Assembly: GCA_964247055.1 (NCBI GenBank)
Contig: OZ176058.1
Location: 1,674,001 to 1,738,000, forward strand
Length of the DNA: 64,000 nt
Source: Paragordius varius
Lineage: Eukaryota; Animalia; Nematomorpha
Direction of reading: 5' to 3'
Under the pieces are notes generated by a model that was given only the letters and a program-made list of their open reading frames with translations, was not told the DNA's origin and ran no database searches. A program made the position numbers and the translations under genes. Positions 1,054 through 61,970 of the stretch are shown piece by piece (position 1 is the stretch's first letter; the number at the start of each line of letters is the position of its first letter).

Positions 1054-1773
1054 ACTATATATAAAAGGTTTTTAAATATAAATATTAAATAATATTGTCT
1101 TTTTGGTTTTGTTTTATGCGTAAAATTCCATTTTTTTACTGTAAATATTTTTTTGATAATTTTACCTAATATAATTAGATTTCATGATTATACTTAATAC
1201 GCAATGATATTAAACTTTAATACAATGTAAAATATATAATTAATCTAATTTAATATGATTGGTAATTTATAATACGACAGTATTAAGATGGCAGATTAGA
1301 ATACGTTAGTAATACTCTTATTCAGTGATGGGGAAATATAAATATTAAATTAATTAAGTTAACCCTAATGCAATAGGTATTAACCATATTTGTTATCCAC
1401 ATTTTCTTTTGTACTAATAAAGGCATTTGAATTAACAAATATCAATATTTTTTTAGCTTTCAAGCGTTAGTTATCATCTATTTTTGAAAATTAAAATTTT
1501 TGGCTATATACAGTCATGTAGACTTTAATTTATCAAAAATTTACTTTTTTTCTTTAAATGGGTATTAATATTTGGTAAAGAATATAAAAACAAGAGCAAT
1601 ATGGTATTACCATATCATATTCTTTAAAAAAAGTAAAAAATGAAGGGGAAGGGCGTCGGAAATCTTTGGTAAAAAATGAAAATACACTAACTACTAACCC
1701 TTCACTTAAAATTGTATAAAAGGGTTAGGAAAATCGTAATTTTTATCTCAAATATAATTTTTTTTGTTTTGAT

Positions 1774-3707
1774 ATGAGAACGATAAAAGGGATTTTTACG
1801 ATAGATGCTATATTAAATAATCGATTTGATCCAATTTCATTAGGATGTAACCCTGGTATTGCGGGTATTTTTTCCTTTATAATGTTAGATTCAGATTATG
1901 TTGACGAAAATATAAGACCCACACAAAATATTGTGCCTAGCAACGATGGTTTTTTTCATTTAAAATCTAGGTGTTAATGAGATCGGCGGGAATGAATTGA
2001 TAGTAGATCCTGGTGTCCTTAATGGTTTTTTTGCCTTTATAATGTTAGATTCAGATTATGTTGACGAAAATATAAGACCCACACAAAATTTTGTCCCTAA
2101 CAACGATGGTATTTTTTTCATTTAGAATCTAGGTGTTAATGAGATCGGCGGGAATGAATTGATAGTAGATCCTGGTGTCCTTAATGGTTTTTTTGCCTTT
2201 ATAATGTTAGATTCAGATTATGTTGACGAAAATATAAGACCCACACAAAATATTGTCCCTAACAACGATGGTTTTTTTTTCATTTAGAATTTAGGTGTTA
2301 ATGAGATCGGCGGGAATGAATTGATAGTAGATCCTGGTGTCCTTAATGGTTTTTTTGCCTTTATAATGTTAGATTCAGATTATGTTGACGAAAATATAAG
2401 ACCCACACAAAATTTTGTCCCTAACAACGATGGTATTTTTTTCATTTAGAATTTAGGTGTTAATGAGATCGGCGGGAATGAATTGATAGTAGATCCTGGT
2501 GTCCTTAATGGTTTTTTTGCCTTTATAATGTTAGATGTTGACGAAAATATAAGACCCACACAAAATATTGTGCCTGGCAACGATGGTTTTTTTCATTTAG
2601 AATTTAGGTGTTAATGAGATCGGGAATGAAAATATGACAACTTCATTAAACGGTAGAGGAAAAAGGAAAAGTACCGTTTTTGTTAATTTTAGAATATAAT
2701 TTTTGGTCAGATGAAAAAAAGTCTAAAGCCTATAAAATTTTCGGGAATCCCATAAATCACGAATTATCGTCTCGTCATTTTGTAGATGATTTAAACATGT
2801 CTATAAGTTCCATAAATGCTATGAGACGAAGCATGACTCTGGGAATAGAGAAAGAGCCATTGAAAAAGGGTAGGAAAACGAAATGCAATGAAGGTCTAGT
2901 CGGGCAGGTCAAAACAATCCTCGATAGTGATTGTGAATTGACTGTCGATGAGATTCTTAATAAATTACCCACAGAATCCAAAATATCCAAAAAAACCTTA
3001 TATAAAATATTTAAAATATTAAACTACACGCGCAAAAGGTGTATTATGGAACCAACAGCGCAATTCCACGTTGGTAATTCAAAAACGATTTGAGTATGCC
3101 TGTCTTGTGAACGGCATACCCTTGGACAAAATCTATTATTTAGATGAGTCGGGGTTTTCCTTGATAGCGAAAAATATATTTGGCCGGGCACCGTCAGGAC
3201 AGGCACCTATCGTAAAGGGCTTCAATAAAGGTATATTTTTATTTTATTTTAGGTAAAAACGTCTCTTTGTTGTGTATGATTGGAATACAGGGTGTTGTTA
3301 ATTACAGCATCAAACAGGGAGCGTTAAATGGCGAGACTTTTAAGCCATTTTTGGAAGAGTCTTTGGCCATGTTACCACAAGATGCGTTTGTCATTTGCGA
3401 CAACGCACCCATACACAAATGTTCTATTTTGGGTAATTTAAGGAACAAGCTTATATATTTACCACCTTATTCGCCCCAACTTAATCCTATTGAATGTTTT
3501 TTTCACGAATTAAAATTTTATTATGAAAAAAAACCAAGATGCACTACATTCTGGGAACAATATTGCAGAATCAAAAGATTGTGCGACGAAAGAAAAACAA
3601 AATCTCTTCAAAATTATTATGATTTTTCAAAAAGAGTTTTAATTGATGTTGCTTTAAAAAAACTAAGGTTGGAAAATGAAAACAATTTTAAACATCATTT
3701 ATTGTAA
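1774..3707 (+). pseudogene. Tc1-like transposase with N-terminal 38-aa tandem repeat, 13 exons and 12 tiny introns; one frameshift near 3058
   Basis: Predicted exons 1774-1864, 1889-1948, 1971-2024, 2049-2108, 2133-2186, 2211-2270, 2295-2348, 2373-2432, 2457-2510, 2535-2585, 2608-2670, 2693-3230, 3253-3707. All introns are GT-AG, 22 or 24 nt, phase 1. Splicing gives RGKRK|KYNFWSDEKK and FNKG|KNVSLLCMIG. The frame breaks only at EPT(g)RNSTLVIQKRFEY. About 550 aa if repaired. Confidence 0.85.
1865..2625 (+). repeat. Tandem repeat, 160-162 bp unit, ~4.7 near-identical copies (coding micro-exon pairs)
   Basis: CCTTTATAATGTTAG recurs at 1874, 2034, 2196, 2358 and 2520. Unit = 60 nt exon + 54 nt exon + two 22-24 nt introns. 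Confidence 0.95.
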
Positions 3708-3880
3708 TTATCAAAGACGATTTAGTTTTTCTTTGATCGCAGAGTACGATATAAAAATAATTTCCAGATATTGCTTTTTTATAACAATTATTATAAAAAA
3801 AACATTCAATAGGGTTAAATAGTGGTAAACTGGTATATATATATGATTGAATTTTAAATTTCCCAAAATAGAGCATTTTA
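3700..3880 (-). repeat. Diverged inverted copy of the transposase 3' region (~3417-3610)
   Basis: Minus-strand translations KCSILGNLK, FNPIECFF and LCDQRKTKS mirror plus-strand KCSILGNLR, LNPIECFF and LCDERKTKS. Confidence 0.8.
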
Positions 3881-4082
3881 GGATGAAACGCATTCAGTTC
3901 GATAATATTTTTTTGTAAACGCTATATAATTCATATTCATTTCCCATGTTTTCCCTTATATACACACACAATTCATAATTTGTCCGTTCTATGTTTTATT
4001 TAATGTGTTATCCTATTATAAAAATTATAATAAATTTTTTTTACCTATATAAAAATCTATATTTAAGTGATTTGTTGTTTAA

Positions 4083-4486
4083 CAATTGGATACAACACAT
4101 TCATTTTTAAGATAAAACCAAAAGGTAAAGATTTAGTGAATGTGACATGTGTGTAATGGTAAAATTGAAAAAGAATACAAAATAAATCGCTTTTTCTATT
4201 TCTATCAAGGTTAGATGTGATTTAAATAAAAAATTATCTTTAATTTTACCCTTAACACTAAATGAAGACGACATTTTGCAAATATTTTGTAAAATAAAAT
4301 GACGTCGAAGTTGTTTGACATGGAACTTTTTTTTCAAAACAAAATTTTATTTAGATATTTGGATTTATATAATTTTTATTAGGAAAGATAAATTTAAATT
4401 GGGACCGTTTCTTTCACTAGTTTTTTAAAAATCCTAACTCAAATTTAGTCTAAGGTATATTTAGATACCCCATTTGAATCTAGGTG
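4083..4486. mobile_element. piggyBac-like MITE (TTAA-flanked) nested in the Tc1 element
   Basis: TTAA|CAATTG...GGTG|TTAA. Body aligns with 49236-49760 and 60667-61239. Confidence 0.7.
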
Positions 4487-5300
4487 TTAAATAAAAATTT
4501 TATCAAAAAAAATTAATATATAAAATTTGAAAAAATTAACAAAAATATTACCATTCCCCTTTAAACAAAATTTAAGATTTACATTTTTTACCAAAGATTT
4601 CTGACGCCCTTCCCCCACACTTCTTTTAATTTTTTTAAAGAATATGATATGGTAATACCATATTTCTCTTGTTTTTATATTCTTTACCAAATATTAATAC
4701 CCATTTAACGAAAAAAAGTAAATTTTTGATAAATTAAAGTCTACATGACTGTAAGCATATATATATTATGAATAATTATTTTATTCATCAAGGAGAGTTA
4801 TATCTAGCTTTTCTTAATTATTACACTAGAAAACAAATTTTTCTGCCACTCGAGTTTTTTACATTATATGATATTTATTATTTTTACGATAAATCTGAAA
4901 TAAAATTTATAATTACACCTAAGAATTTTGTATAATTTGATTTTTTGATTATGCGCCCTTTTATTTTACTAAATGTTACTCTTAAATATACAACAAATGC
5001 CCGTTAAAATATCATCTGAAAGAGTTATGAAAACGTTTTACTTGTTAATATTGGACATAGCGACAAACGCGAGAAGCGAGAGTGTTTTTATTAATTAATA
5101 TAAAAATAAAACTAATGAATGAAAATAGCTCAAACTTTGTCTAGATGTCAAAAGCCCAAAAAAGATAACATAAGAAGTTTTTTAATTAAACCACTAATAA
5201 AAATTACCATAGCAATATTAATTTATTTTTTTAGGAGGCTCATAATTCCAAAGACTAGTAACAAAGTTTAAATTATTTTTTATTTTTCTAAGATTAAGTA

Positions 5301-5974
5301 CAAACATGAATATTTTGTTACTTGTGTATTTTTATTGTTAAGGGAAAAGCAATTATATTAACCATATCCTTCCTATTCATTAAAAAAGTAAAAGAGTTGT
5401 GAGGGAAAGGCGTCGGAAACTTTGGTAAAAATGAAAATACACTAACACCTAACCCTTATCTTAAAATATTGTTAAAGGGGAATGGTAATAATTTTTTCTG
5501 CTAATTTTTTAGCAAAATTTTTTAACTATTTTTTTCGAAATTTTTTTTATTTTTAAAGAAAACAAATTAACCACGTTAAAATTAATTTTGATGTGTAGAT
5601 AATAAAATAAAAAATATTACAGTTTAGAGTCTCTTTTTTCCTTTTTTATTAAAGGGTAAGGACTTAAATTGTATCCGGACATGTGAAGGCTTTAACACTC
5701 GCCTGCCCAGGGCTGACAGTGATGATGGAAAAAATGCGTAGTTTCGGGGTTCGAACTCTGGCACGCAGAGTTAGAGTCCGTCGCCCTACAAAATACATAA
5801 TTTTAAGTGAAGGGTGTTAGTTGTTGGTGTTTTTTATTTTTTACCAAAAATTCCCGACGCTCTTGCTTCACACTTCTTTTATTTTTTTGATGTGATATGG
5901 TAAATGCCATAGGGCTCTTTTTAACAAATAAAATACAATTAAAAAAAATTGCCAGAATGAAAGATTCATGACTG
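5301..5974. mobile_element. Non-autonomous MITE related to the Tc1 TIR (CAGTCATG ends)
   Basis: Ends CAAACATGAA / TTCATGACTG. Internal GGGAA(A/G)GGCGTCGGAAA-type motif shared with the Tc1 TIR. Paralogous to 34689-35172. Confidence 0.7.
5620..5795 (-). mobile_element. 5'-truncated tRNA-derived SINE
   Basis: The minus strand reads GTAGGGCGACGGACTCTAACTCTGCGTGCCAGAGTTCGAACCCCG (anticodon-arm-like plus B box GTTCGAACC), then a GC-richer body and an A-rich tail. Absent from the paralogous MITE at ~34980. Confidence 0.55.
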
Positions 5975-21348: not shown

Positions 21349-23491
21349 TCAATCAAAGTTATTTATGAAACTGCCAACAGTCATGTCCGAAATGTTAGAT
21401 CGATTTTTTGCAATTTTTGTTGGACTCTCAGTAATATTTATGCCAGTAGGGACAAAAAACATAAATCGATTCCACACGGAAATATTTTCATTATTTTCTG
21501 GTTTCCTTAAATTGGGATTAACATTAGAGCTCAAATTGTGGAAATTAGTTGGTTGATGTTTAGAGTGTTTTCGCTTACTTTTGTGCTTTCTGTGTGCGAC
21601 ATCGGAACTATACCCTAACAGAATATACAAAAATAATTAAACTGATTGAAAAATTATGTTAAAAGTTTTAAATATATGGTTAGTCCTAGATCAACTTTGC
21701 GAGTTAAAATATGTCAAATATTTTCCATATTAATTAGAGATTAGCATTTCCATTACCCAAATCTGGTTTTGTATAAATATTTTTTAGTTATTATGATTCA
21801 TTTGAAGATATTTAGTTTTTGAATAATATTTATTTATAGTAACTAGAGTTATCAAAAGGCCACCCGTTTTATTATTTTAAATGGTTAAAAGGGAATTTAA
21901 TTTAAATTTGTAGTGCCATGTATGAGAATTTTTGTTTTTTTTACATAATTACTGTATATTTCTCAGTATTTTTATTTAATGTAACCACCTATAAAAACAA
22001 AAAATTTACATGTCAACAGACATTCAAACTAAATCCCAATTTGCCAATTACAGTATGCATATTCATCCTTGCATATTCGATCATTGAAATATATGGTAGT
22101 ATATGGGTAAAAACAAAAAAATATGTTGAAATTAATTAATTACTCTTGTATTACAACATTAATTTTTTATTTAATAATGGCGAATTCGTTTTATAACACA
22201 TGTTACGTGGCCAACAATAATATGAATAGGCCACCATAAATGTATATACTGTGTTTTACCGTTAACACCCCACTACCTTTTGGAATAGTTTTCGAATTTG
22301 ATCATCCTTAAAAATATTTAAAACATTAACTAAAATTATTCAATATACTTTTTTAGTATTTTAGGCGCATTATACGAAACAAATTTAAAAAATATTGTAA
22401 AATCCTTAGCTCAATTTTCGCCGCCATTTTATTTCTTTAAATTTATTTAACACTTTGATTCAAATTGGGATATCTGAATACCCCAAACAATATTTTATTT
22501 GATATTTTCAAAAAATTACTGCAAGATACGGTTCCAATTTATTATGCTTTACTATCAATAAAAATTATATTAATAAGCCAAAATATCTAAATGAAAACTA
22601 GATTTGAAAAAAAATATCGTATCAAACTCTTGAACGCCATTTTACACCATTTTTGCAAAATATCGTGTTTATTTTATTTTAAGCCTAAAATAATGTTCCT
22701 TTTTTGTTAAAATTAAATTTAACATTAATATAAAAAGAGAAGCGGTATATTTTGCATCATTTTTGTATTTTGCTTTGTCATGTTGGCTAAATCTTTACCT
22801 TTGTAAATCTGAATAAGTAATATCAAGTATTTTTGAATCGATTTATTTTTATGTATTTAGGTTCATTAATGTTATATAAGTGCAAACTTTTGCCATGGTT
22901 TAAATTTATTCCATATTTTTTAAAATTTTGATCTTAAACAAGCCTAAGATATCTAACTACCTCGTATTAATAATCGAAGGACTGAAATGTGTTATATCCT
23001 AGTGTTTAATCGATAAGGTAATAGACAAATAAAATTATATTATGGTAAAATGTAAATAATTAACTTAACTTTCAGGTTACATTTTACCAGCAAAAACTTG
23101 ATATATATGATTTAAATATCAATTGTTCATTTCACTCGTGTTTTGGAGTTGTACCTCTTAAAATTAAAAAAATATAGAAACCTTAAGCTTTAATACATGA
23201 GAAGCATGTTTGATTATAAGATATTATCTAAAATAACTTTCAAAACTGTGTATATTTATGATGAGCTCTAAGATGACTACCCAATATGTCATAGCGGACA
23301 AAAAGCGAAAAAAGTCATGAAGTTTTTAATAGCTTTCGTTACTGTATTTACAAACATATTTAAACATATAAGTTACCATTTAGTTTGTTGAAATTACGAG
23401 TGGTAACACCACCAGATAGTTGGGTTAGAGTACATAAATATAAATAGATGTAAAATAAAAGGACAAAATATTTTTGATTTTTAACATACAT
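21349..23491 (-). CDS. Candidate secreted protein, copy B (C-terminus shortened by a 1 nt insertion)
   Basis: Exon 1 23377-23491 open with GTAACT donor. Terminal exon 21349-21614 (GYSSDVAHRKHKSKRK...INNFD*). Confidence 0.4.
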
Positions 23492-40490: not shown

Positions 40491-43400
40491 TAAGGTGACC
40501 AGATTTTTTGAAGGAAAAAGCGGGACAAATCTGAGAAGGGGGATGGGGGTCATTGGGGGGTACAACCAAAAATTTTTATACAAAAAATTTATTGCAATAT
40601 TTATTTATTTTTAACACAAATACATTATGAATATAAAAAAATTGTACCTTATTCAATAAATTTACATGTGCACGAACAAAGGGTGAAGTGATTGTAATCT
40701 AGAAAAAAAAATAATAAAGACGAAATCATCACAAAGTGCGCTGGGTGATGCAAGAAGCGGCACAAAAAATATTTTTAACAATTTAGCGAATAATCTTAAT
40801 CAAAACATTATTGGCAGATACACAACGCTATTCAAACAGCTACTGATTTGTTACCCCTGGATGTAGAAAATGTACCTGATATAATGCTTGGATATTCTAG
40901 AACTCGTTGGTTAGCTCTTTTGCCAGCTATTGAAAAAAATTTAAAAATGCATGATCGCCTAGAACTATTTTTTATCACAGGACAAATGTCTAAAATTCCA
41001 AGTCAAAAAAGGTTAAAAAATAATTTTATACCATTACCTAATCGCATTATTATAAATCATCCAGAAAAACAAGGCTCAATGAATAGCCAGGATATAAAAA
41101 TGTTTTATACAAACAGAAACGATTATTTGGAAGACAAGACAGTGCAATTCAATGACACTTTTTTTGAAGTATCATTATTAAATAAATATATTGAATGAAA
41201 ACTTATATTATGGCAACAGAAAAAAATACGTAGGATAAAACATCCTTTTTAAACAAATTATGTTCCATACAATAATATTTTAATTGTAGAATTTGCATTA
41301 TCTTTACCTGAACCACTGGTATTGAACGCGTTTTTAAGTAAATTAAGTAAGGACACGGAATCAAATTTAAATGTTGAATAAAAGCCATTTAATGTGTTCA
41401 AATATAATTTGACATGAAGACTTATAAATTAACACAAAAACTTGAAAGAAAATATTTTATTCTTTGGTATATTTTCGTTTGAGTGAATGCGTTTTAGCAG
41501 ATTGTCATCATTTTTTAAAATATTGTAGAAGTCTTCACAAGAATTTGTCAAATTAAATTTAGCAGATAAAAAGGCCTTTAAAGTTTCAACATTTAAATTT
41601 GATTTTTCCGATGTTAACACTTGATTTACTGCGAAAAAACGCGCTCAGTAGCAGCGTTGGTTCCAGGTAAAGATAATGCGAATTCCACAATATTTAAAAT
41701 ATTATTGTATGTAATATAGTTGGCTTCAAAATAATGAAATATTTCCAACCATTTCTTTTCTACTGATATTTTTCTTTTGTCCATAATTTAAGTTTTTCAT
41801 TATTAATATATCTTTTAACTAATAATTCTTCATAAAAAAGATCATTTTCTGAAAGATTACTTTTTGAGAATTTAACAGATATAATCAAATGATTTTTGAA
41901 CATCGCACCAATTAAATGCTGTTTTTAATGTTATCCAATGAAAATGTTCAATTTCATTGAATTGTGTAGTCCAGTCTTCCAAATAATCTTTACAGTTTGT
42001 ATAAAACATTTTTATATGGTACAGGATGGCGATTTATTAAGCCTTGTTGTTCTAAATTATTTATTATATTGCGGATCGTTAGTGGTATAAAATTATTTTC
42101 TAACCGTTCTTGACATTGGAATTTTAAGTTACTAACTTTATTGGCTACTTCGATTGCCGAAATTTTGTCACCCTCTATAAATTTAATAAAATTTTGAAAG
42201 AGAGAAGCTTGATTATGAATTCTAACCTTTTTGACGAATCACAAAAAATTTTTTTAAAGTTGTAGGACATTTGTCCTGTGATAAAAAAATGATTTTAAAG
42301 GATCATAGATTTTTAAAATTCTTTCAATAGCTGGCATAAAAGTTAACCAACGAGTTTTACAATATCCAAGCATTTTTTGATATTGAACTTCTGCATTTGC
42401 ACAGAATTCTTTAAGCGTTTCAACACGTACCGTTTATATATAAAAATAGAAATATATTTTAACAACTACATTTTCCACATCTAGGGGTAACAAATCAGCA
42501 GCTGTTTGAATAGCATTGTGTATTATGTGCGCTGCACACCTGACGCCAATAATGTTTTGATTAAGATTATCTGTAAATTTATGAAAAATATATTTTGTTC
42601 CCCTCCTTGCTTTTCCACCAAAGTTCGTATTGGTGTTGTCAGCGCAATATGCGATAATTTTGTCTTTTAAATTATTTTTTTCTAGAATATGATTATTGAA
42701 GTAAATATCGGAATTTTCACCGGGTAGAGAAATTAAATCTAAAATTTTAATTTTTACTCCGGTTTCTGAATCCAAATATCTTATTAAAGTGGGAAATATT
42801 TTGTTTAATGGTGATTTGATGCATCAGAGTATAGGGATAAAAAATTAATTTTCAGCAAATCTTTTTGTATTTCAGAAAATGCATGTGGCGAAAGGACATT
42901 GCACACAATGGGTTCAGTCTTTGTACGGGCACATGTAAATTTTTTATGGAATAACGTGCGAATAACTTGTGAGGTAAAATCCATAGATCTAAAGGAATGA
43001 TTGTGATAAACGGCGTGAAAAGATAAAACGCCTTCGGCTAATGCCAAATTCTTTTCTTCCTCTCCAAAAGCGGTTTTTCGAAAAAAATTGCTCATTTTGT
43101 AAGATGATGCCTCCATATCCAAACATTTTTTGATGTTTCTGTGTTTCCATATGCTTTTTAATATCATGCATGCCGCCATGTTCTAGCCTCGCATAAAAAA
43201 CATTTAACAAATGATTCATTATTCGTTTTGATAAAAGGAAATTCTTCCATTAATTTATCGTTGAATTTACAACCTCTTTTTGCGCTCATATTTATATAGT
43301 ACTATTAGTATAATAAATATTATTATACCTTAATTTTCTGGAATAAACGTGTAAGGTACCGATTTGTGGTATCAATTTGTCTTTTAAGCTCCAGATTTGT

Positions 43401-45409: not shown

Positions 45410-48400
45410 TCATGCGAATTTATGTATATTGCAACCAAATGCATTTTCAGACGTGTAACCAATGTATAAGAAGCCATCCGAATCCTTATTTTGTTTGTAG
45501 AGATCAAGGAGTATTGTACTATTTACAGTAACAATTAAAATTATAAAAAAGATAAAACATATAAAATTAAAACACTAAAAACTATTTTTATAAAGGAAAT
45601 AAAATTTTTGATTATTAATTTTTTCGATAATTACATTATTTTTAAAAATAACAAAGTGTGTTAGAAATCAAAAAGTATTGTACTATTCACAGTAAGAATT
45701 AAAATTATAAAAAAATAAAACACTAAAAACTATTTTTATAAAGGAAATAAAATTTTTGATTATTGATTTTTTCGATATATCCTAAATTATTCATATTTTT
45801 GAAAATAATCAAATGAATTTATTTGTACCCCAAAACAATAGGTTTTGTTTTTGTAGAAAAAAAGATTCATATTTAATCATTTTAAAGTATATTAGTATTC
45901 TATGTTAAACGTTTTGATTTAATAATTTCAATTATTACTATTGAGAAATTTATGGATAAATTATTATATTTTATTTAATGCTTACCAGATAAGAAGATTT
46001 ACAGTAAATATTTTTATAATGATTATTGATACCCTATATAATAATATAATTTCGTTTTTAATAAATTGTGTAAAATTAAAATCTCGCCAAGTACATAAAA
46101 ATGAGAATAAAACTAAAAATTTTCGATATAATGATATAATCTACATTACAGGGATAAAACTTTACATTTTAATTAATTGATTATATCAGACTCATTCTTA
46201 AATATATGACAATGTTCGCATTTTTATTGGGTGAAATTTTAATTTGTTTTCTAAAGGGAAATAGTATTACCATAATGCATTTTACAAATATCTGGAAAAA
46301 TTTAACAAAAAAAACTAGCAATATATTTTTACAGTCATCTTAGTGTATAAAAATATAAGGTTAATTATATATTTTGATTATTTACGGTAAAACTTTGAGT
46401 TTAAAATATAGAACGCGAGATTTTAAATTTACAATTTAAAAGTTGTTAACTTAAAAAAATAATAATTATATTTTTCCAAGTTAAAATAATATAGACGGTA
46501 GAAATTAAAAAATTAGTGTTTAAGCTAACGACCTCCAAAAAAAAGCTTAAATTCCCTTATATTCTGTTTAACTCTTTATAAATTTTAAATTTCTTAAATC
46601 TAAAATTTTTATTTAATTCTTTGATGTTTTATATAAAAAACTTTTTGCACACCTAGAATTAGGTATCATAGCCTTATTAACATAAATCGAAAGCGTTTGT
46701 TCAGCTTTTATGTTTAAGCGTTTACGTATAATCCATATGAGTTAAAATTAAAAAAATTAGTGTTTAAGCTAATAACTTTAAAATCATGTATTTTACATAC
46801 ATCTAAATAAAATTATTTTAAAAATATAAAGAATTTTTATCTTTCTAATTTTTCATATTTTTCTTTTAACTATAATAAAAATATGCTTACACAGGAATTG
46901 GGTATCTTAGCCTTACTAACATAAATCTATAGCGTTAATATGGCTTTTAATAACATTATGAATACAAATACTGAAAATTTTTTGATAATTAAAATATAGT
47001 AAATTTCATATTCCCTTCAAGTTGGCCTTTATTATATTAAGAAATAAAAGTTATAGTTTTAGATTTCTTAAATCTAAAACTTTTATTTATTTATTTTGTA
47101 TATATAAAAAACTTTTCCACACCTAGAATTAGGTATCATCGTTTTATTAACATAAATCGATCGCGTTTATTTGGCTTATAAAAACATTATGAATACAAAT
47201 ATTGAAAAATTTTTGATAATTAAAATTTAGTAAATTTCATATTCCTTCAAATTGGCCTTTATATTAAGAAATAAAAGTTTTAGTTTTAGGTTGAAACTCT
47301 CAATTTACAGTCAAAACTTACCCTTTTTTAACAATTCAAATTGACCCTTGAACGATTCAAAATCATCCTAAATATAAATTTTGTGTTTTCTCACTAATGT
47401 AATTAATTATTAATATAAAATATCTCTTTATTGCATAGTTAATTATTTTTTCAATATTATTTTAATTTAAAACAAAATTTTATTTTTACATATATTAAAT
47501 TATCGGTAATTTTGAATTTTAAAAATATAGAGAATTTGAATTGTTTAAGGTTGAATTTAAATTGTTTAAGGGAAAATTTGAATTTAAGGTTTAATTCAAA
47601 TTGTTTAAAGGTAAATTTGAATATAAATTTTTTATTTGATACTTTAATTTTTTATAAAAAAATTTTGCACACCTATAATTGGGTATCATCGTTTTATTAA
47701 CATAAATCGATAGAGTTTGTTCAGCTTTTATGTTTAAGCGTTTACGTATAATCCATATGAGTTGAAATAAAAATTAGTGTTTAAGCTAATAACTTTAAAA
47801 TCATGTATTTTACATATATCTAAATAAAATTATTTTGTGACTATAAAGTAGTTTTATCTTTCTAATTTTTTATTTAATTATAATAAAAATATGCTCACAT
47901 ATCTTAGCTTTATTAATATAAATCGATAGCGTTAATTTGGCTTTTAAAAACATTATAAATACAAATACTGAAAAATTTTGATAATTAAAATTTAGTAAAT
48001 TCCATATTCCTTCAAGTTGGCCTTTATATTAAGAAATAAAAGTTATAGTTTTATTTGGCTTTTAAAACTATCAATTTACAGTCAAAATTTACCCTTTTAC
48101 AATTCAAATTGACCCTCGAACGTTTCAAATTCATCCTAAAAATAAATTATGTGTTTTCTCACTAATATAACTCATTATTAATATAAAATATCTCCTTACT
48201 GCATAGTTAATTATTTTTTCAGTATTATTTTAATTTGAAACAAAATTTTAATTTAACATTTAAAAAATATCGTTAATTTTAAATTTTGTAAATATAATTT
48301 ATTTGAGGGTTTAAATTGTTCCAGGGAGAATTTGAATTGTTTAAGGTTGAATTCGAATAGTTTAAGGGTATATTTAAATCTATAATTTTTATTTAACTCG

Positions 48401-51061
48401 TTGATTTTTTATATAAAAAAAAGTTTTTGCACACCTAGAATTAGGTATCATCGTTTTATTAACATAAATCGATAGAGTTTGTTCAGCTTTAATGTTTAAG
48501 CGTTTACGTATAATCCATATGAGTTGTGCTACGCTTAAATCTTGAGGAACCAAATATTTATGTTTATCAATGTCAGGTATGTCGGCATTTGGTATCCGTT
48601 CTATAATTATCTGTTGAATATGAATAGAAAATAAAAAGATATAGCAGAGAAACCTGAAATAAATGTATTTCAATATTTCATTTATGTCTTAAATAATCAG
48701 TTGTTTTTATTAATCAGTTGTTTTAATTAATTAGTGGTTTTAATCAATCACTTGTCTAAATAAATCAGTTTTTTTTATTAATCAGTTGTTTTAATTAATC
48801 AGTTGTCTTAATTAATCAGTTGTCTAAATTAATCAGTTGTTTTAATTAATCAGTTGAATCAGTTGTTTTATTAATCAGTTGTTTTAATTAATAGGTTGTT
48901 TTAATCAGTTTTATTCAACCAGTTGTTTTAATTAATCAGTTGTTTTGATTAATTAGTTGTTTTAATTAATCAGTTGTTTTAATCAGTTTTATTCAACCAG
49001 TTGTCATTAATCACTTGCCTAAATTAATCAGTTGTCTTAATTAATTAATTGTGATTAATCAGTTTTATTCAACCAGTTGTTTTAATTAATCAGTTGTTTT
49101 AATTAATTGGTTGTTTTAATTAATCAGTTGTTTTCATTAATCAGTTGTTTCAATAATACAATATTCATCACATTTATGTTGGCTTATTCACATTATTGTT
49201 GGTCAATTGAGTAATACAATAGCGTTTGGTATTAACACTTGCTCCAATTCAACTTGAAATAGTCGGATACCCCAAACTGATTTTATATTAAATACCTAAT
49301 AAAATATGGAAGGAATCGAAACCATAGCAGAATATAGCACTTATAATAACATTAATAAGACGGAAATGAAAAAATTTGTTCAAAAATAGTTGATTTTACT
49401 TAATACAAGGTAATGACAAAAGGTAAAAATATGGTCAACGTGACATGTGTGCACTGGTAAAATTGAAGAATAATTCAATATAAATCACTTTTTGTCTATA
49501 AAAAGCTTTAAATTTACCATTAAATTTAAATGAATACGATATTTTGCAAATATTTTGCAAAATAAAATGGCGTTCAAGTAGTTTGATATGCAACTTTTTT
49601 ACACTTAATTTTATTTGGATATTTTAGCTTATTATTTATATAATTTTTTATAGTAGGATAGAAGCATAAATTCAATTTGGTAACGTTTCCTTCGTTAGTT
49701 TAATAAAAATGTAAATTATTTAGTCTGGGGTATTTAGATACCCCAATTAAAATCGAAGTATTAAACACATTTAGTCCATAATATAAGGCAACAGTTATTA
49801 ATGTAAGATAGGCAAAAATTGTCCAATTTCAACATTGTATTGTTTTTTTCCATACACTACTGCGTTGTTACCTATTGACCGGACAAAGTATAATGTGAAT
49901 ATTTCTGTATAAATGTGCTTATTGATATTTATATTAAACAAGAAAAGTTATACAGTCATACATCCTTTATTTTATCAAAAATTTATTTATTTTCTTTCGT
50001 TAAATGTTTGGGGTATAAATATTTGATAAAAAATGGAAAAAACATAAGCTTTATGGTGTAATTCTTATATTTTTTATAGATATTGTTTATACCATAGAGC
50101 TCTTGTTTTTTCCATTCTTAAGCAAATATTTATACACACCATTTAAAAAAAAATTTTTTTTATAAAATAAAGGATACATGACTGTAAATACCAGTATTAA
50201 TAAAAAAGTATACAATGTTAGTTTTTTATTGATGATTAACAAATAGAATTTATATACAAAAAGAAGTATTATTAGTTTACAGTTATGAATATTGCATTTA
50301 TTACTGCATTTCACCAATTCGTGAAATGCTAGTTAATTTTGTCATTCAAAATTAAAATTATAAAAACAAAAATTTTTAATTAAAGGAAAAACAAAAAAAA
50401 TTTCTATTTTTATTATAAATGTAATAATTCTTTAATTTCTACCAAAATTTATGTATTAAAAATGTTATTAGGCGCATTAAAATTGATAAATAAAGTAAAA
50501 CTCTATGAAATTTCATTTTCAAATGCATTCATCAAGCGGTAACCTTAATATAAGTTTTTTTGCCCCAAATCAAATATAAAAGATATAAACGAAAAAAACT
50601 ATTTTAAGTCCAAAAGTAATATATGCATTAATTTTAGGGGTTTTATTTAAAAATATATTTTTATAAAAACTAATGGTCATATAAATGTGTTTAATGATGA
50701 TTTCATGATATATTTTCGTCAACTAAAAATATTTTTAATTTTGTGTAAAATATGCTAAAATTACGGAAAAAACTTTCAAAGTATTTGTTTTTTACGTACT
50801 TTTGGGACAATAATTAAATATTTTTTGCTATAAAAATATGTTCTAGTTAAAAATTTCTACAAAAGTTTCAAATAAGATAATAAATATATTTTCAATAAAA
50901 TCATGAAATGCTCACAATAAATAAAGATATTATTAACTTACGGGAATTTTATCGGGATATTTTGTGAAAACTTTCTGTGCTTCGGCTTGTCTTCGAGCTA
51001 TAAGTTAATATAATAAAAACTTACAAAGAACATTTTCTTCTTTAAACTTCCAATTTATCAT
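45410..51061 (-). CDS. GABARAPL2: Autophagy ubiquitin-like protein ATG8, GABARAPL2/GATE-16-like, 125 aa
   Basis: Exons 51025-51061, 50942-50997, 48435-48610 and 45410-45518, all GT-AG and phase-consistent. MINWKFKEENVLSRRQAEAQKVFTKYPDKIPIIIERIPNADIPDIDKHKYLVPQDLSVAQLIWIIRKRLNIKAEQTLSIYVNKTMIPNSSTILLDLYKQNKDSDGFLYIGYTSENAFG|CNIHKFA. ATG8 family is certain; the subfamily call rests on WxFKE, WIIRKR and ENxFG. Confidence 0.92.
46640..48430 (-). repeat. Local tandem duplications of the ATG8 exon-3 3' end and donor, interleaved with MITE pieces
   Basis: CACCTAGAATTAGGTATCAT-type segments at ~46650, 46890, 47120 and 47670. The longest (46653-46743, 47673-47764) extend ~90 nt into exon 3. Confidence 0.85.
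48693..49150. repeat. Minisatellite, ~13-17 bp unit (AATTAATCAGTTGTTTT) in ATG8 intron 2
   Basis: About 27 degenerate copies of the AATCAGTTG core. Confidence 0.9.
49236..49760. mobile_element. piggyBac-like MITE (TTAA-flanked) in ATG8 intron 2
   Basis: TTAA|CACTTG...CGAAGTA|TTAA. Aligns with 4083-4486 and 60667-61239. Confidence 0.7.
49953..50184. mobile_element. Tc1-related MITE in ATG8 intron 2
   Basis: TA|CAGTCATACATCCTTTATTTTA...TAAAATAAAGGATACATGACTG|TA. Confidence 0.8.
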
Positions 51062-60666: not shown

Positions 60667-61239
60667 CACTTGGATACAACACATTCATTTTAGTCCTTCT
60701 ATTCAAATTGGGGTAGTAAAATAGCCCAGGCTTGTTTAAAATTAAATTCTTTAAAAAATATGAAAGGAATCCACACCATTGCAAAATTTAGCACTTATAT
60801 AACATTAATAAACCGAACTATATCAAAAGTTTTATTCAAAAATACTTGATATTACTTATTTTAAGCTAAAAGCGATAGGTAAAAATTTAGTCAACGTGAC
60901 ATCTGGGCAATGGTAAAATTGAAAAATAATACAAAATAAACGGCTTTTTCTATTTTTCTCAATGTTATATGTAATTTAAATGTAATATTAGTTTTAATTT
61001 TACCCTTAAAACTAAATGAAGACGATATTTTGCAACAATATTAAATAAAAATGGCGTCGAAGTAGTTTGAGATGGAACTTTTTTTTCAATATAAAATTTA
61101 GATATTTTGGTATATTTATTTAATTTTTCTTATGATAGAAGCATAATTTTAAACTGGGACCGTTTCATTCAGTAGTTTTTTAAAATTCTAATTTAAATTT
61201 AGTCTGGGGTATTTAGATACCCCAATTTGATTCGAAGTG
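60667..61239. mobile_element. piggyBac-like MITE (TTAA-flanked)
   Basis: TTAA|CACTTGG...TTCGAAGTG|TTAA. Confidence 0.75.
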
Positions 61240-61970
61240 TTAATGTAAACGAATGTTTAGATAAAATTTTGAAGCGATAGAAAGGTTCAGCAATATTGAA
61301 TTATATAGCAAAATGTTTTTATAATATCATGCACTTTTATGCCTCAAAATAGTATAAAGTATTTCCAACATAACTTTGCAAAAAATCAAATTTAATTATG
61401 CACTTTTTAAAAATATTTTTTATGCAAAACTATTTAGTATAATTGAATTTTAATGGCGCAATCTTTGTATTTTTGGGTTTATTTTATGTGAACTAACCCA
61501 TTTTAAAAGAGCGAAAAATTGAGGACTTTCGAAGCCCACATATAAAATTATATTTTAAAAAAATACGGTTGTGCTTTTTATAAATAGGTTATGATATATT
61601 TTAGTGTTTAGAATCAAGGCTTAGCTTTCATTAAAAAATAAAAAAAATGAGCGCGACTTTTACCATCAGTGATATAGACCGCCTTCCAGAAAAGTGTAAA
61701 GAGATTTTCATATCACTCGAAAGGTTTAAGACCAAAATTTTCATACACCATATACTTTCTACAGAAAAAATATATTTTATCAAGTTTTTTCTTATACCTT
61801 CCGATTTTGAACGCATTGTAATGATGTATAAAATTTTTATTTTTGATTGTCGATTATTGCCTTAAATGACCGCATTTATCCGCAATTCGCTTTGGCTGGT
61901 TTTATGTTTTTTAGCGATTTTACATCATTTTAACTGTTAAGTTAGATAATTTCTTTATATAATCTTGTAG

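Follow-up and report, generated by a model that had tools for sequence, protein, structure and literature searches.

A 162-bp tandem repeat near the left end of a DNA transposon raises the question of whether it is a non-coding minisatellite or a part of the transposase gene built from very short exons and introns. The repeat lies in a 64,000-nt stretch of the genome of the hairworm Paragordius varius (contig OZ176058.1, positions 1,674,001 to 1,738,000 of the forward strand). This whole stretch is called the window below, and all coordinates are counted from its first letter. The window is very AT-rich, with a GC content of 24.6%, and one 3.2-kb DNA transposon of the Tc1/IS630 type occupies positions 1509–4753. 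The explanation favored here, with moderate confidence, is that the array is a micro-intron/micro-exon module amplified in tandem near the 5' end of the transposase coding sequence, in a copy that was later broken downstream.

Anatomy of the tandem array

Tandem Repeats Finder reports one array at 1864–2623, with a period of 162, 4.8 copies, and 95% matches. The original prediction, made from the letters of the sequence, had decomposed this repeat exactly into exons of 60 and 54 nt and eleven GT-AG pieces of 22 or 24 nt, all in phase 1. These coordinates were reproduced by pattern search and scripted splicing. The parts of the predicted 5' region, up to and including the exon that follows it, are listed here.

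1774–1864, plus strand: predicted exon 1, ATG and 30 codons, ending at a GT in phase 1 (pattern search and scripted splicing)
1864–2623, plus strand: 162-bp tandem array of 4.8 units, each with a type 1 piece of 24 nt, exon A of 60 nt, a type 2 piece of 22 or 24 nt, and exon B of 54 nt
1865–1888, 2025–2048, 2187–2210, 2349–2372, and 2511–2534, plus strand: five type 1 pieces of 24 nt, stop-free (GT-AG ends, composition)
1949–1970, 2109–2132, 2271–2294, 2433–2456, and 2586–2607, plus strand: five type 2 pieces, each bringing an in-frame stop if retained (GT-AG ends, frame, composition)
2608–2670, plus strand: last N-terminal exon, VNEIGNENMTTSLNGRGKRK, with ATG 2634 and a basic GRGKRK motif (scripted splicing)
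2671–2692, plus strand: 22-nt GT-AG micro-intron in phase 1 that joins the N-terminal exons to the DNA-binding exon (required for the frame)
2693–3038, plus strand: putative bipartite helix-turn-helix DNA-binding exon (114-codon open frame, AlphaFold model)

All five type 1 pieces are 24 nt long and follow the pattern GT(A/T)TTTTT(T/G)CCTTTATAATGTTAG. The type 2 pieces follow GT..TTTTTCATTTA(A/G)AAT(C/T)TAG, with lengths of 22, 24, 24, 24, and 22 nt. With the piece at 2671–2692 added, these are the eleven GT-AG pieces, and every one is in phase 1. The exons measure, in order, 91 nt, then 60 and 54 nt four times over, 51 nt, and 63 nt, and one unit comes to 162 nt in genomic form and 114 nt (38 codons) when spliced. 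Since all junctions share phase 1 and 114 is divisible by three, units can be added without a change of frame. The proposed amplification of a symmetric module is thus borne out by the tandem intron–exon–intron–exon unit and its spliced length. Scripted splicing leaves the frame open from ATG 1774 through 2693–3038, and the predicted product consists of four acidic 38-residue repeats, a shortened fifth, the stretch ...MTTSLNGRGKRK, and the DNA-binding exon.

The two types of piece differ in what their retention would do. A retained type 2 piece introduces a stop, whereas a type 1 piece left in place is read through as eight additional hydrophobic residues. The frame therefore needs the removal of only the five type 2 pieces and 2671–2692. 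The original count of eleven introns is secured by the frame for these pieces, and removal of the stop-free type 1 pieces is unnecessary.

Differences among the units carry some record of how the array grew. Units 2–4 are 1–3 letters apart, and units 1 and 5 are more diverged. Unit 2 is nearest to unit 4, which points to a two-unit block in the last duplication. The last exon, 2608–2670, resembles exon B over its first ~24 nt only. In length, units 1 and 5 are set apart by a 2-nt change in the T-run of their type 2 pieces; unit 5 also lacks 9 nt of exon A, and 3 nt are missing from the last exon. That length changes fall inside introns or come in multiples of three, as had been pointed out, holds as an observation. 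It carries less weight than it was given, because T-runs slip anyway and the 3-nt loss is a slip of CGG, leaving the 9-nt loss as the informative case. The gene is 1934 nt long in this copy and would be 1286 or 1448 nt without four or three of the units.

Other copies of the element can be followed in contigs from DNA sequencing runs. These contigs cover the array and contain T-run length variants behind 1867 and 2586, inside predicted introns; the 2671–2692 piece is present unspliced in them. The summed depth of the array relative to the gene body corresponds, as a rough estimate, to ~1.6–2.9 units per average copy.

Coding-like signals in the array

The array shows statistical marks of coding exons split by micro-introns, and these marks are supported beyond what chance would give. 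For the chance test, 4,000 anchors were drawn at random from both strands of the window, and an open path was extended upstream of each, with GT-AG skips of 20–28 nt allowed. Such paths reach 319 nt from 0.5% of the anchors and 400 nt from 0.2%, compared with an observed path of 416 nt when units 2–4 are removed and 830 nt when the array is left uncollapsed. In a scan of the whole window, the array path was the longest by a factor of three (1877 nt versus 626 nt for the runner-up).

Composition separates the two kinds of sequence. The exons are 31–43% GC and 21–33% T. The short pieces number twelve when the homology-confirmed intron at 3231–3252 is included, and they are 9–27% GC and 54–68% T; the type 1 pieces are 58% T and 21–25% GC. 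All twelve are 22 or 24 nt long, which falls in the 20–30-nt class of spliceosomal micro-introns, and they begin with GT(A/T) and end with (T)TAG, the same as the confirmed intron. In a nucleotide model of codon positions, for which the transposase body served as training set, the N-terminal exons score 9.5 log units better in the proposed frame (P 0.0002 by comparison with random stretches), and exon A, exon B, and the last exon each favor this frame individually. Among the units, 3 of 114 exon positions vary, against five substitutions and two length changes in 48 intron positions. The lower variation of exons is in the expected direction, with small numbers.

The transposase and its broken frame

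The features downstream of the DNA-binding exon make up the catalytic part of the gene.

3040–3059, plus strand: frame change of this copy (upstream frame with a stop at ~3091; downstream frame with homology from 3059, starting RNSTLVIQKRF)
3059–3230, plus strand: exon with the first catalytic D, in LDESGF (DDE_3 positions 2–28, homolog alignment)
3231–3252, plus strand: 22-nt micro-intron in phase 1 (removal confirmed by homology)
3253–3707, plus strand: exon with the second D, in CDNAP, and the E, in NPIE, ending in a TAA stop at 3705–3707 (PF13358 DDE_3, E 2.1e-15)

The Pfam DDE_3 profile (PF13358) matches at 3255–3707 with an E value of 2.1e-15, and 3059–3229 matches the first 28 positions of the same profile. 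When 3231–3252 is removed, the profile positions run on from 28 to 37 over the junction. The joined protein also aligns without a gap across this junction to 17 IS630/DDE_3 proteins, with the D, D, and E in register. DNA contigs of other copies contain this 22-nt piece as well, which marks it as an intron shared across the family rather than an insertion private to this copy. Catalytic spacing is D-77-D-30-E, with four residues fewer from the second D to the E than in all 17 aligned relatives. This short spacing (3410–3500) may be a trait of the family or a sign of decay. The closest protein in a 5.8-billion-protein collection reaches 52% over 44% of the C-terminal exon, in a search whose length filter would miss full-length spliced products.

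A single-sequence AlphaFold model of the DNA-binding exon contains five helices with a mean pLDDT of 69, rising to 83–90 in the second half. The best full-length Foldseek matches of this model are the Pax-6 paired domain, Mos1, and SETMAR, with E values of 0.6–1.3 that are not significant. The modeled fold would fit a paired-like DNA-binding domain without proving one. The exon has no Pfam match and no sequence relative among 1.84 billion representatives.

With its TA duplication, inverted ends, and DDE_3 domain with D, D, and E aligned to homologs, the element is a member of the Tc1/mariner/IS630 superfamily, one with a broken frame and a putative DNA-binding fold. The transposase identity first proposed for it is upheld. 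The proposed in-frame fusion of the repeats to the transposase extends as far as the DNA-binding exon and, in this copy, does not reach the catalytic domain. The frame change at 3040–3059 lies downstream of the span considered in the original prediction and was missed there. A 20-nt GT-AG intron at 3039–3058 was tried as a repair and gives the wrong frame; the same is true of an 18-nt variant and of an AAAAG acceptor, and no donor lies upstream. An autonomous copy would have an uninterrupted transposase frame, and here it is interrupted at 3040–3059. Because of this single change, the full enzyme cannot be encoded by this copy, which is most likely a dead member of its family.

Boundaries and mobility of the element

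Both ends of the transposon are defined by inverted repeats and a target-site duplication.

1509–1683, plus strand: left TA duplication and left terminal inverted repeat, which starts CAGTCATGTAGAC (inverted arms, exact terminal word, empty-site contigs)
4577–4753, minus strand: right terminal inverted repeat and TA duplication at 4752–4753 (inverted arms, terminal word, empty-site contigs)

The arms at 1509–1638 and 4624–4753 are 98% complementary over 130 nt, and the similarity continues at 83% to 1683 and 4577, for a total of ~175 nt. The terminal word CAGTCATGTAGAC is exact at both ends, at 1511 and 4739, and the TA duplication at 1509–1510 and 4752–4753 flanks the transposon. Contigs from three DNA runs (X1, X3, and X4) connect 1508 to 4752 with two letters (TA) in common and the element exactly absent, which fixes its boundaries. 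The joint in these contigs represents either an empty allele, in which case the insertion is polymorphic, or a repeated flank at a paralog that the element does not interrupt. Deletion derivatives also occur in these DNA runs, their left breakpoints falling at 1713, 1751, and 1853, and many of the contigs match the element at 90–99%. The transposon family is therefore multi-copy and has been mobile. No further copy of the transposase gene was found in the 64-kb window.

Two runs labelled as other organisms (X5 and X11) contain a fraction of 0.34–0.39 of the words of the element or of the array, and one X5 contig differs at a single letter of 141 over 2761–2901. These matches could come from a sibling species, from carry-over of the animal's DNA into a host sample, or from horizontal spread.

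Proposed start site and mechanism

A candidate promoter lies between the left inverted repeat and the array.

1715–1722, plus strand: TATAAAAG, a TATA-box-like word (read in the sequence, with a putative promoter function)

This word sits just inside the stretch lost by the deletion derivatives and 59 nt ahead of ATG 1774, with no other ATG in between. A transcript starting near TATAAAAG would hold 32 ATGs ahead of ATG 2634. Either the array is coding, then, or it is not part of a transcript from the candidate promoter TATAAAAG. We infer from the sequence that the short pieces would be spliced out and that translation would begin at ATG 1774.

In the proposed mechanism, the gene would begin at ATG 1774, downstream of the TATA-like word by the left inverted repeat, and a set of short N-terminal exons with phase-1 micro-introns would precede the DNA-binding exon. 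Slippage or unequal exchange would probably have multiplied the four-part module (micro-intron, exon A, second micro-intron, and exon B) in tandem, with a two-unit block as the likely most recent step. Each new unit would add one acidic 38-residue repeat ahead of the basic GRGKRK motif and the helix-turn-helix domain. The acidic repeat is probably a tolerated, disordered N-terminal extension. The earlier suggestions that the array is building a new domain, or that its pieces form a splicing switch, are speculation. Taken together, the observation behind the original prediction is confirmed and its interpretation is partly supported.

Weighing the explanations

Several points weigh against an amplified coding module. 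The units are 95–99% alike, and the five in-frame units therefore amount to about one independent observation. Exon 1 (1774–1864), taken alone, has a codon-position score that is neutral between frames. Since the 24-nt type 1 pieces are free of stops, their status as introns derives from composition. The transposase frame shifts once between ~3040 and 3059, where there is no GT-AG piece of suitable length. ATG 2634, just ahead of the helix-turn-helix part, could be the canonical start of the transposase. Neither the acidic repeat nor the DNA-binding exon has a detectable relative. In five RNA-labelled runs of Paragordius varius, the fraction of sampled words present is 0.00. The four runs that were mapped are DNA, and their contigs are unspliced across 2671–2692 and 3231–3252, with no joint at any predicted junction. 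One further run of unknown kind (X12), with 24 million letters and from the sample that also gave X2 and X4, contains 0.39 of the words of the array.

Some of these points are shared by a rival account, which we regard as unlikely, in which the array is a non-coding minisatellite in a 5' leader or promoter, derived from a duplicated gene start. The transposase would then be translated from ATG 2634 (MTTSLNGRGKRK...), only the 2671–2692 intron would be needed, and the open frame through the array would be an inherited leftover. DNA transposons often contain tandem repeats internally. A Tc1-type transposase usually starts about where ATG 2634 lies, in frame and ~13 codons ahead of the helix-turn-helix exon, and with units this similar the frame would be largely inherited from one of them. 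Expression of the array is also seen in no RNA. However, both the composition periodicity and the open-path tests speak for coding in the predicted frame. The array begins only after the TATA-like word and the first ATG, a leader spanning the array would contain 32 upstream ATGs, and no TATA-like word is found just ahead of 2634. A second account, which seems about equally improbable, accepts transcription of the array and has most of it removed, from an early donor (e.g., 1865) to a late acceptor (e.g., 2534 or 2607). The inner units would form a long composite intron, and the protein would contain zero, one, or a variable number of repeats. With all junctions in phase 1, any pairing of a donor and an acceptor of like type would indeed preserve the frame. 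Against this, each module retains both splice sites 22–24 nt apart, the spacing of the confirmed intron, and a choice of the nearest site would therefore include every exon. The exon sequences are also less variable among units than the intron sequences.

A different kind of proposal concerns origin and is compatible with the amplified coding module, namely that the start of a host gene was captured, which would have supplied the N-terminal exons together with their promoter, ATG, and micro-introns, and that amplification followed. The acidic repeat would in that case be a piece of host origin and not an invention of the transposase. In favor of capture, the N-terminal exons show no likeness to any transposase or Pfam family. 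Yet no host gene with this sequence was found, in a search that covered the 64-kb window and no proteome of the species, and nothing similar occurs elsewhere in the window. We consider capture improbable. Among the searches for relatives, Pfam gives no match to the 38-residue repeat unit or to exon 1, and a 30-nt word from exon A has no match in the metagenome contigs of JGI.

Significance of the proposed amplified coding module

If the array is spliced and translated, it would indicate that working micro-exons and micro-introns can be strung together as a minisatellite-like tandem repeat and that a mobile element could build up a new protein segment, 38 residues at a time, with its frame intact throughout. 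It would be a compact and datable case of domain growth by symmetric exon duplication, as well as a natural test of the spliceosome on introns of 22–24 nt set 54–60 nt apart. Without expression, the array would be an ordinary tandem repeat inside a dead copy of a transposon.

A more ambitious extension, which we consider doubtful, is that the array is translated and its length tunes the activity of the transposon itself. Each acidic 38-residue repeat could mask the adjoining basic DNA-binding part, and each module would bring one more stop-containing micro-intron that has to be removed. More units would then mean less full-length transposase, and activity would vary among copies according to their unit number. 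If true, this would be a self-limiting device that arises by micro-exon amplification, a kind not described for Tc1/mariner elements.

Other features of the element and the window

Two more features lie within the transposon, downstream of the transposase gene.

3796–3885, minus strand: inverted partial copy of the element's own coding stretch 3410–3503 (inverted-repeat search; tblastn, minus strand)
4083–4445, no strand assigned: nested repeat in the 3' non-coding part of the element (summed contig depth; further copies in the window)

The inverted copy is 77–87% like 3410–3503 and sits just past the stop codon. A read-through transcript over it could pair as a hairpin with the transposase mRNA. 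The nested repeat of ~360 bp has a summed contig depth of 50–100 times that of the transposase body, and more copies of it occur in the window at 60859–61243, 49417–49765, and 22426–22802. Its depth means that it belongs to a far more abundant family than the transposon does. It is perhaps a MITE (miniature inverted-repeat transposable element) that inserted into the transposon. Short inverted-repeat elements at 5371–5479/5799–5922, 34750–34878/34995–35097, and 49951–50186 are 76–82% like the subterminal stretch 1592–1724 and are probably non-autonomous relatives of the transposon.

Elsewhere in the window, a hAT-like transposase remnant lies at 42300–43300 on the minus strand, with the motifs CAAH..HNA and KTRW. 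It is spread over several frames, with at least one frame change that is not an intron. An ATG8/GABARAP-like exon is found at 48389–48673 on the minus strand (PF02991, E 1e-19), and a minisatellite of ~20 nt (AACTGATTAAT...) at 48700–49150 lies ahead of it. Host genes in the window were sought for calibration of the micro-introns, and the search gave only the ATG8-like exon and the decayed hAT-like frames, with no clean case.

Relation to known transposons and exon duplications

A search of the literature on hairworm introns and on N-terminal repeats in Tc1/mariner elements found nothing pertinent. The claim that no described element is like this one holds for the combination, i.e., a minisatellite of two-exon, two-intron modules at the start of a transposase, which is not described in the literature searched. 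Its ingredients are known singly. Introns of host size in such elements and in-frame growth by symmetric exons have been seen before; the tandem array is what is new.

The Tc1/mariner/IS630 superfamily has intron-bearing members, including Minos and elements of Paramecium with host-sized introns of ~25 nt. The hairworm element resembles the superfamily in its TA duplication, inverted ends starting with CAGT, a single transposase gene, a DDE domain (PF13358), and a putative N-terminal helix-turn-helix. It resembles the intron-bearing members in having predicted introns that would fall in the host's own size class. A ciliate origin of the sequence, first suggested by introns this small and by the AT-richness, was rejected because the gene has no in-frame TAA or TAG. 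The element differs from the superfamily in the ~220 predicted residues of amplified micro-exon module ahead of the DNA-binding domain and in a DNA-binding exon that has no detectable sequence relatives. It also departs from the nearest IS630 relatives that were aligned, with 30 residues from the second D to the E where they have 34.

The manner of growth recalls Patthy's rule, by which symmetric phase 1-1 exons can be multiplied or skipped without loss of the frame. As in symmetric exon duplication, the repeat period here is an exon–intron module, which the repeats of the predicted protein would match, all junctions share one phase, and the spliced unit is divisible by three. Unlike the classical cases, the introns are only 22–24 nt and the exons 54–60 nt, and a two-exon module forms one minisatellite-like unit of 162 bp, found in a mobile element instead of a host gene for an extracellular protein.

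The piggyBac transposase offers a parallel for the predicted protein. It has an acidic, disordered N-terminal region that is reported to restrain transposition. The hairworm element would similarly have an acidic and probably unstructured extension ahead of the DNA-binding parts of a cut-and-paste transposase. However, piggyBac belongs to another superfamily, and its acidic region, neither a tandem repeat nor built from micro-exons, contrasts with the extension proposed here, which would be assembled from repeated micro-exons in steps of one module.

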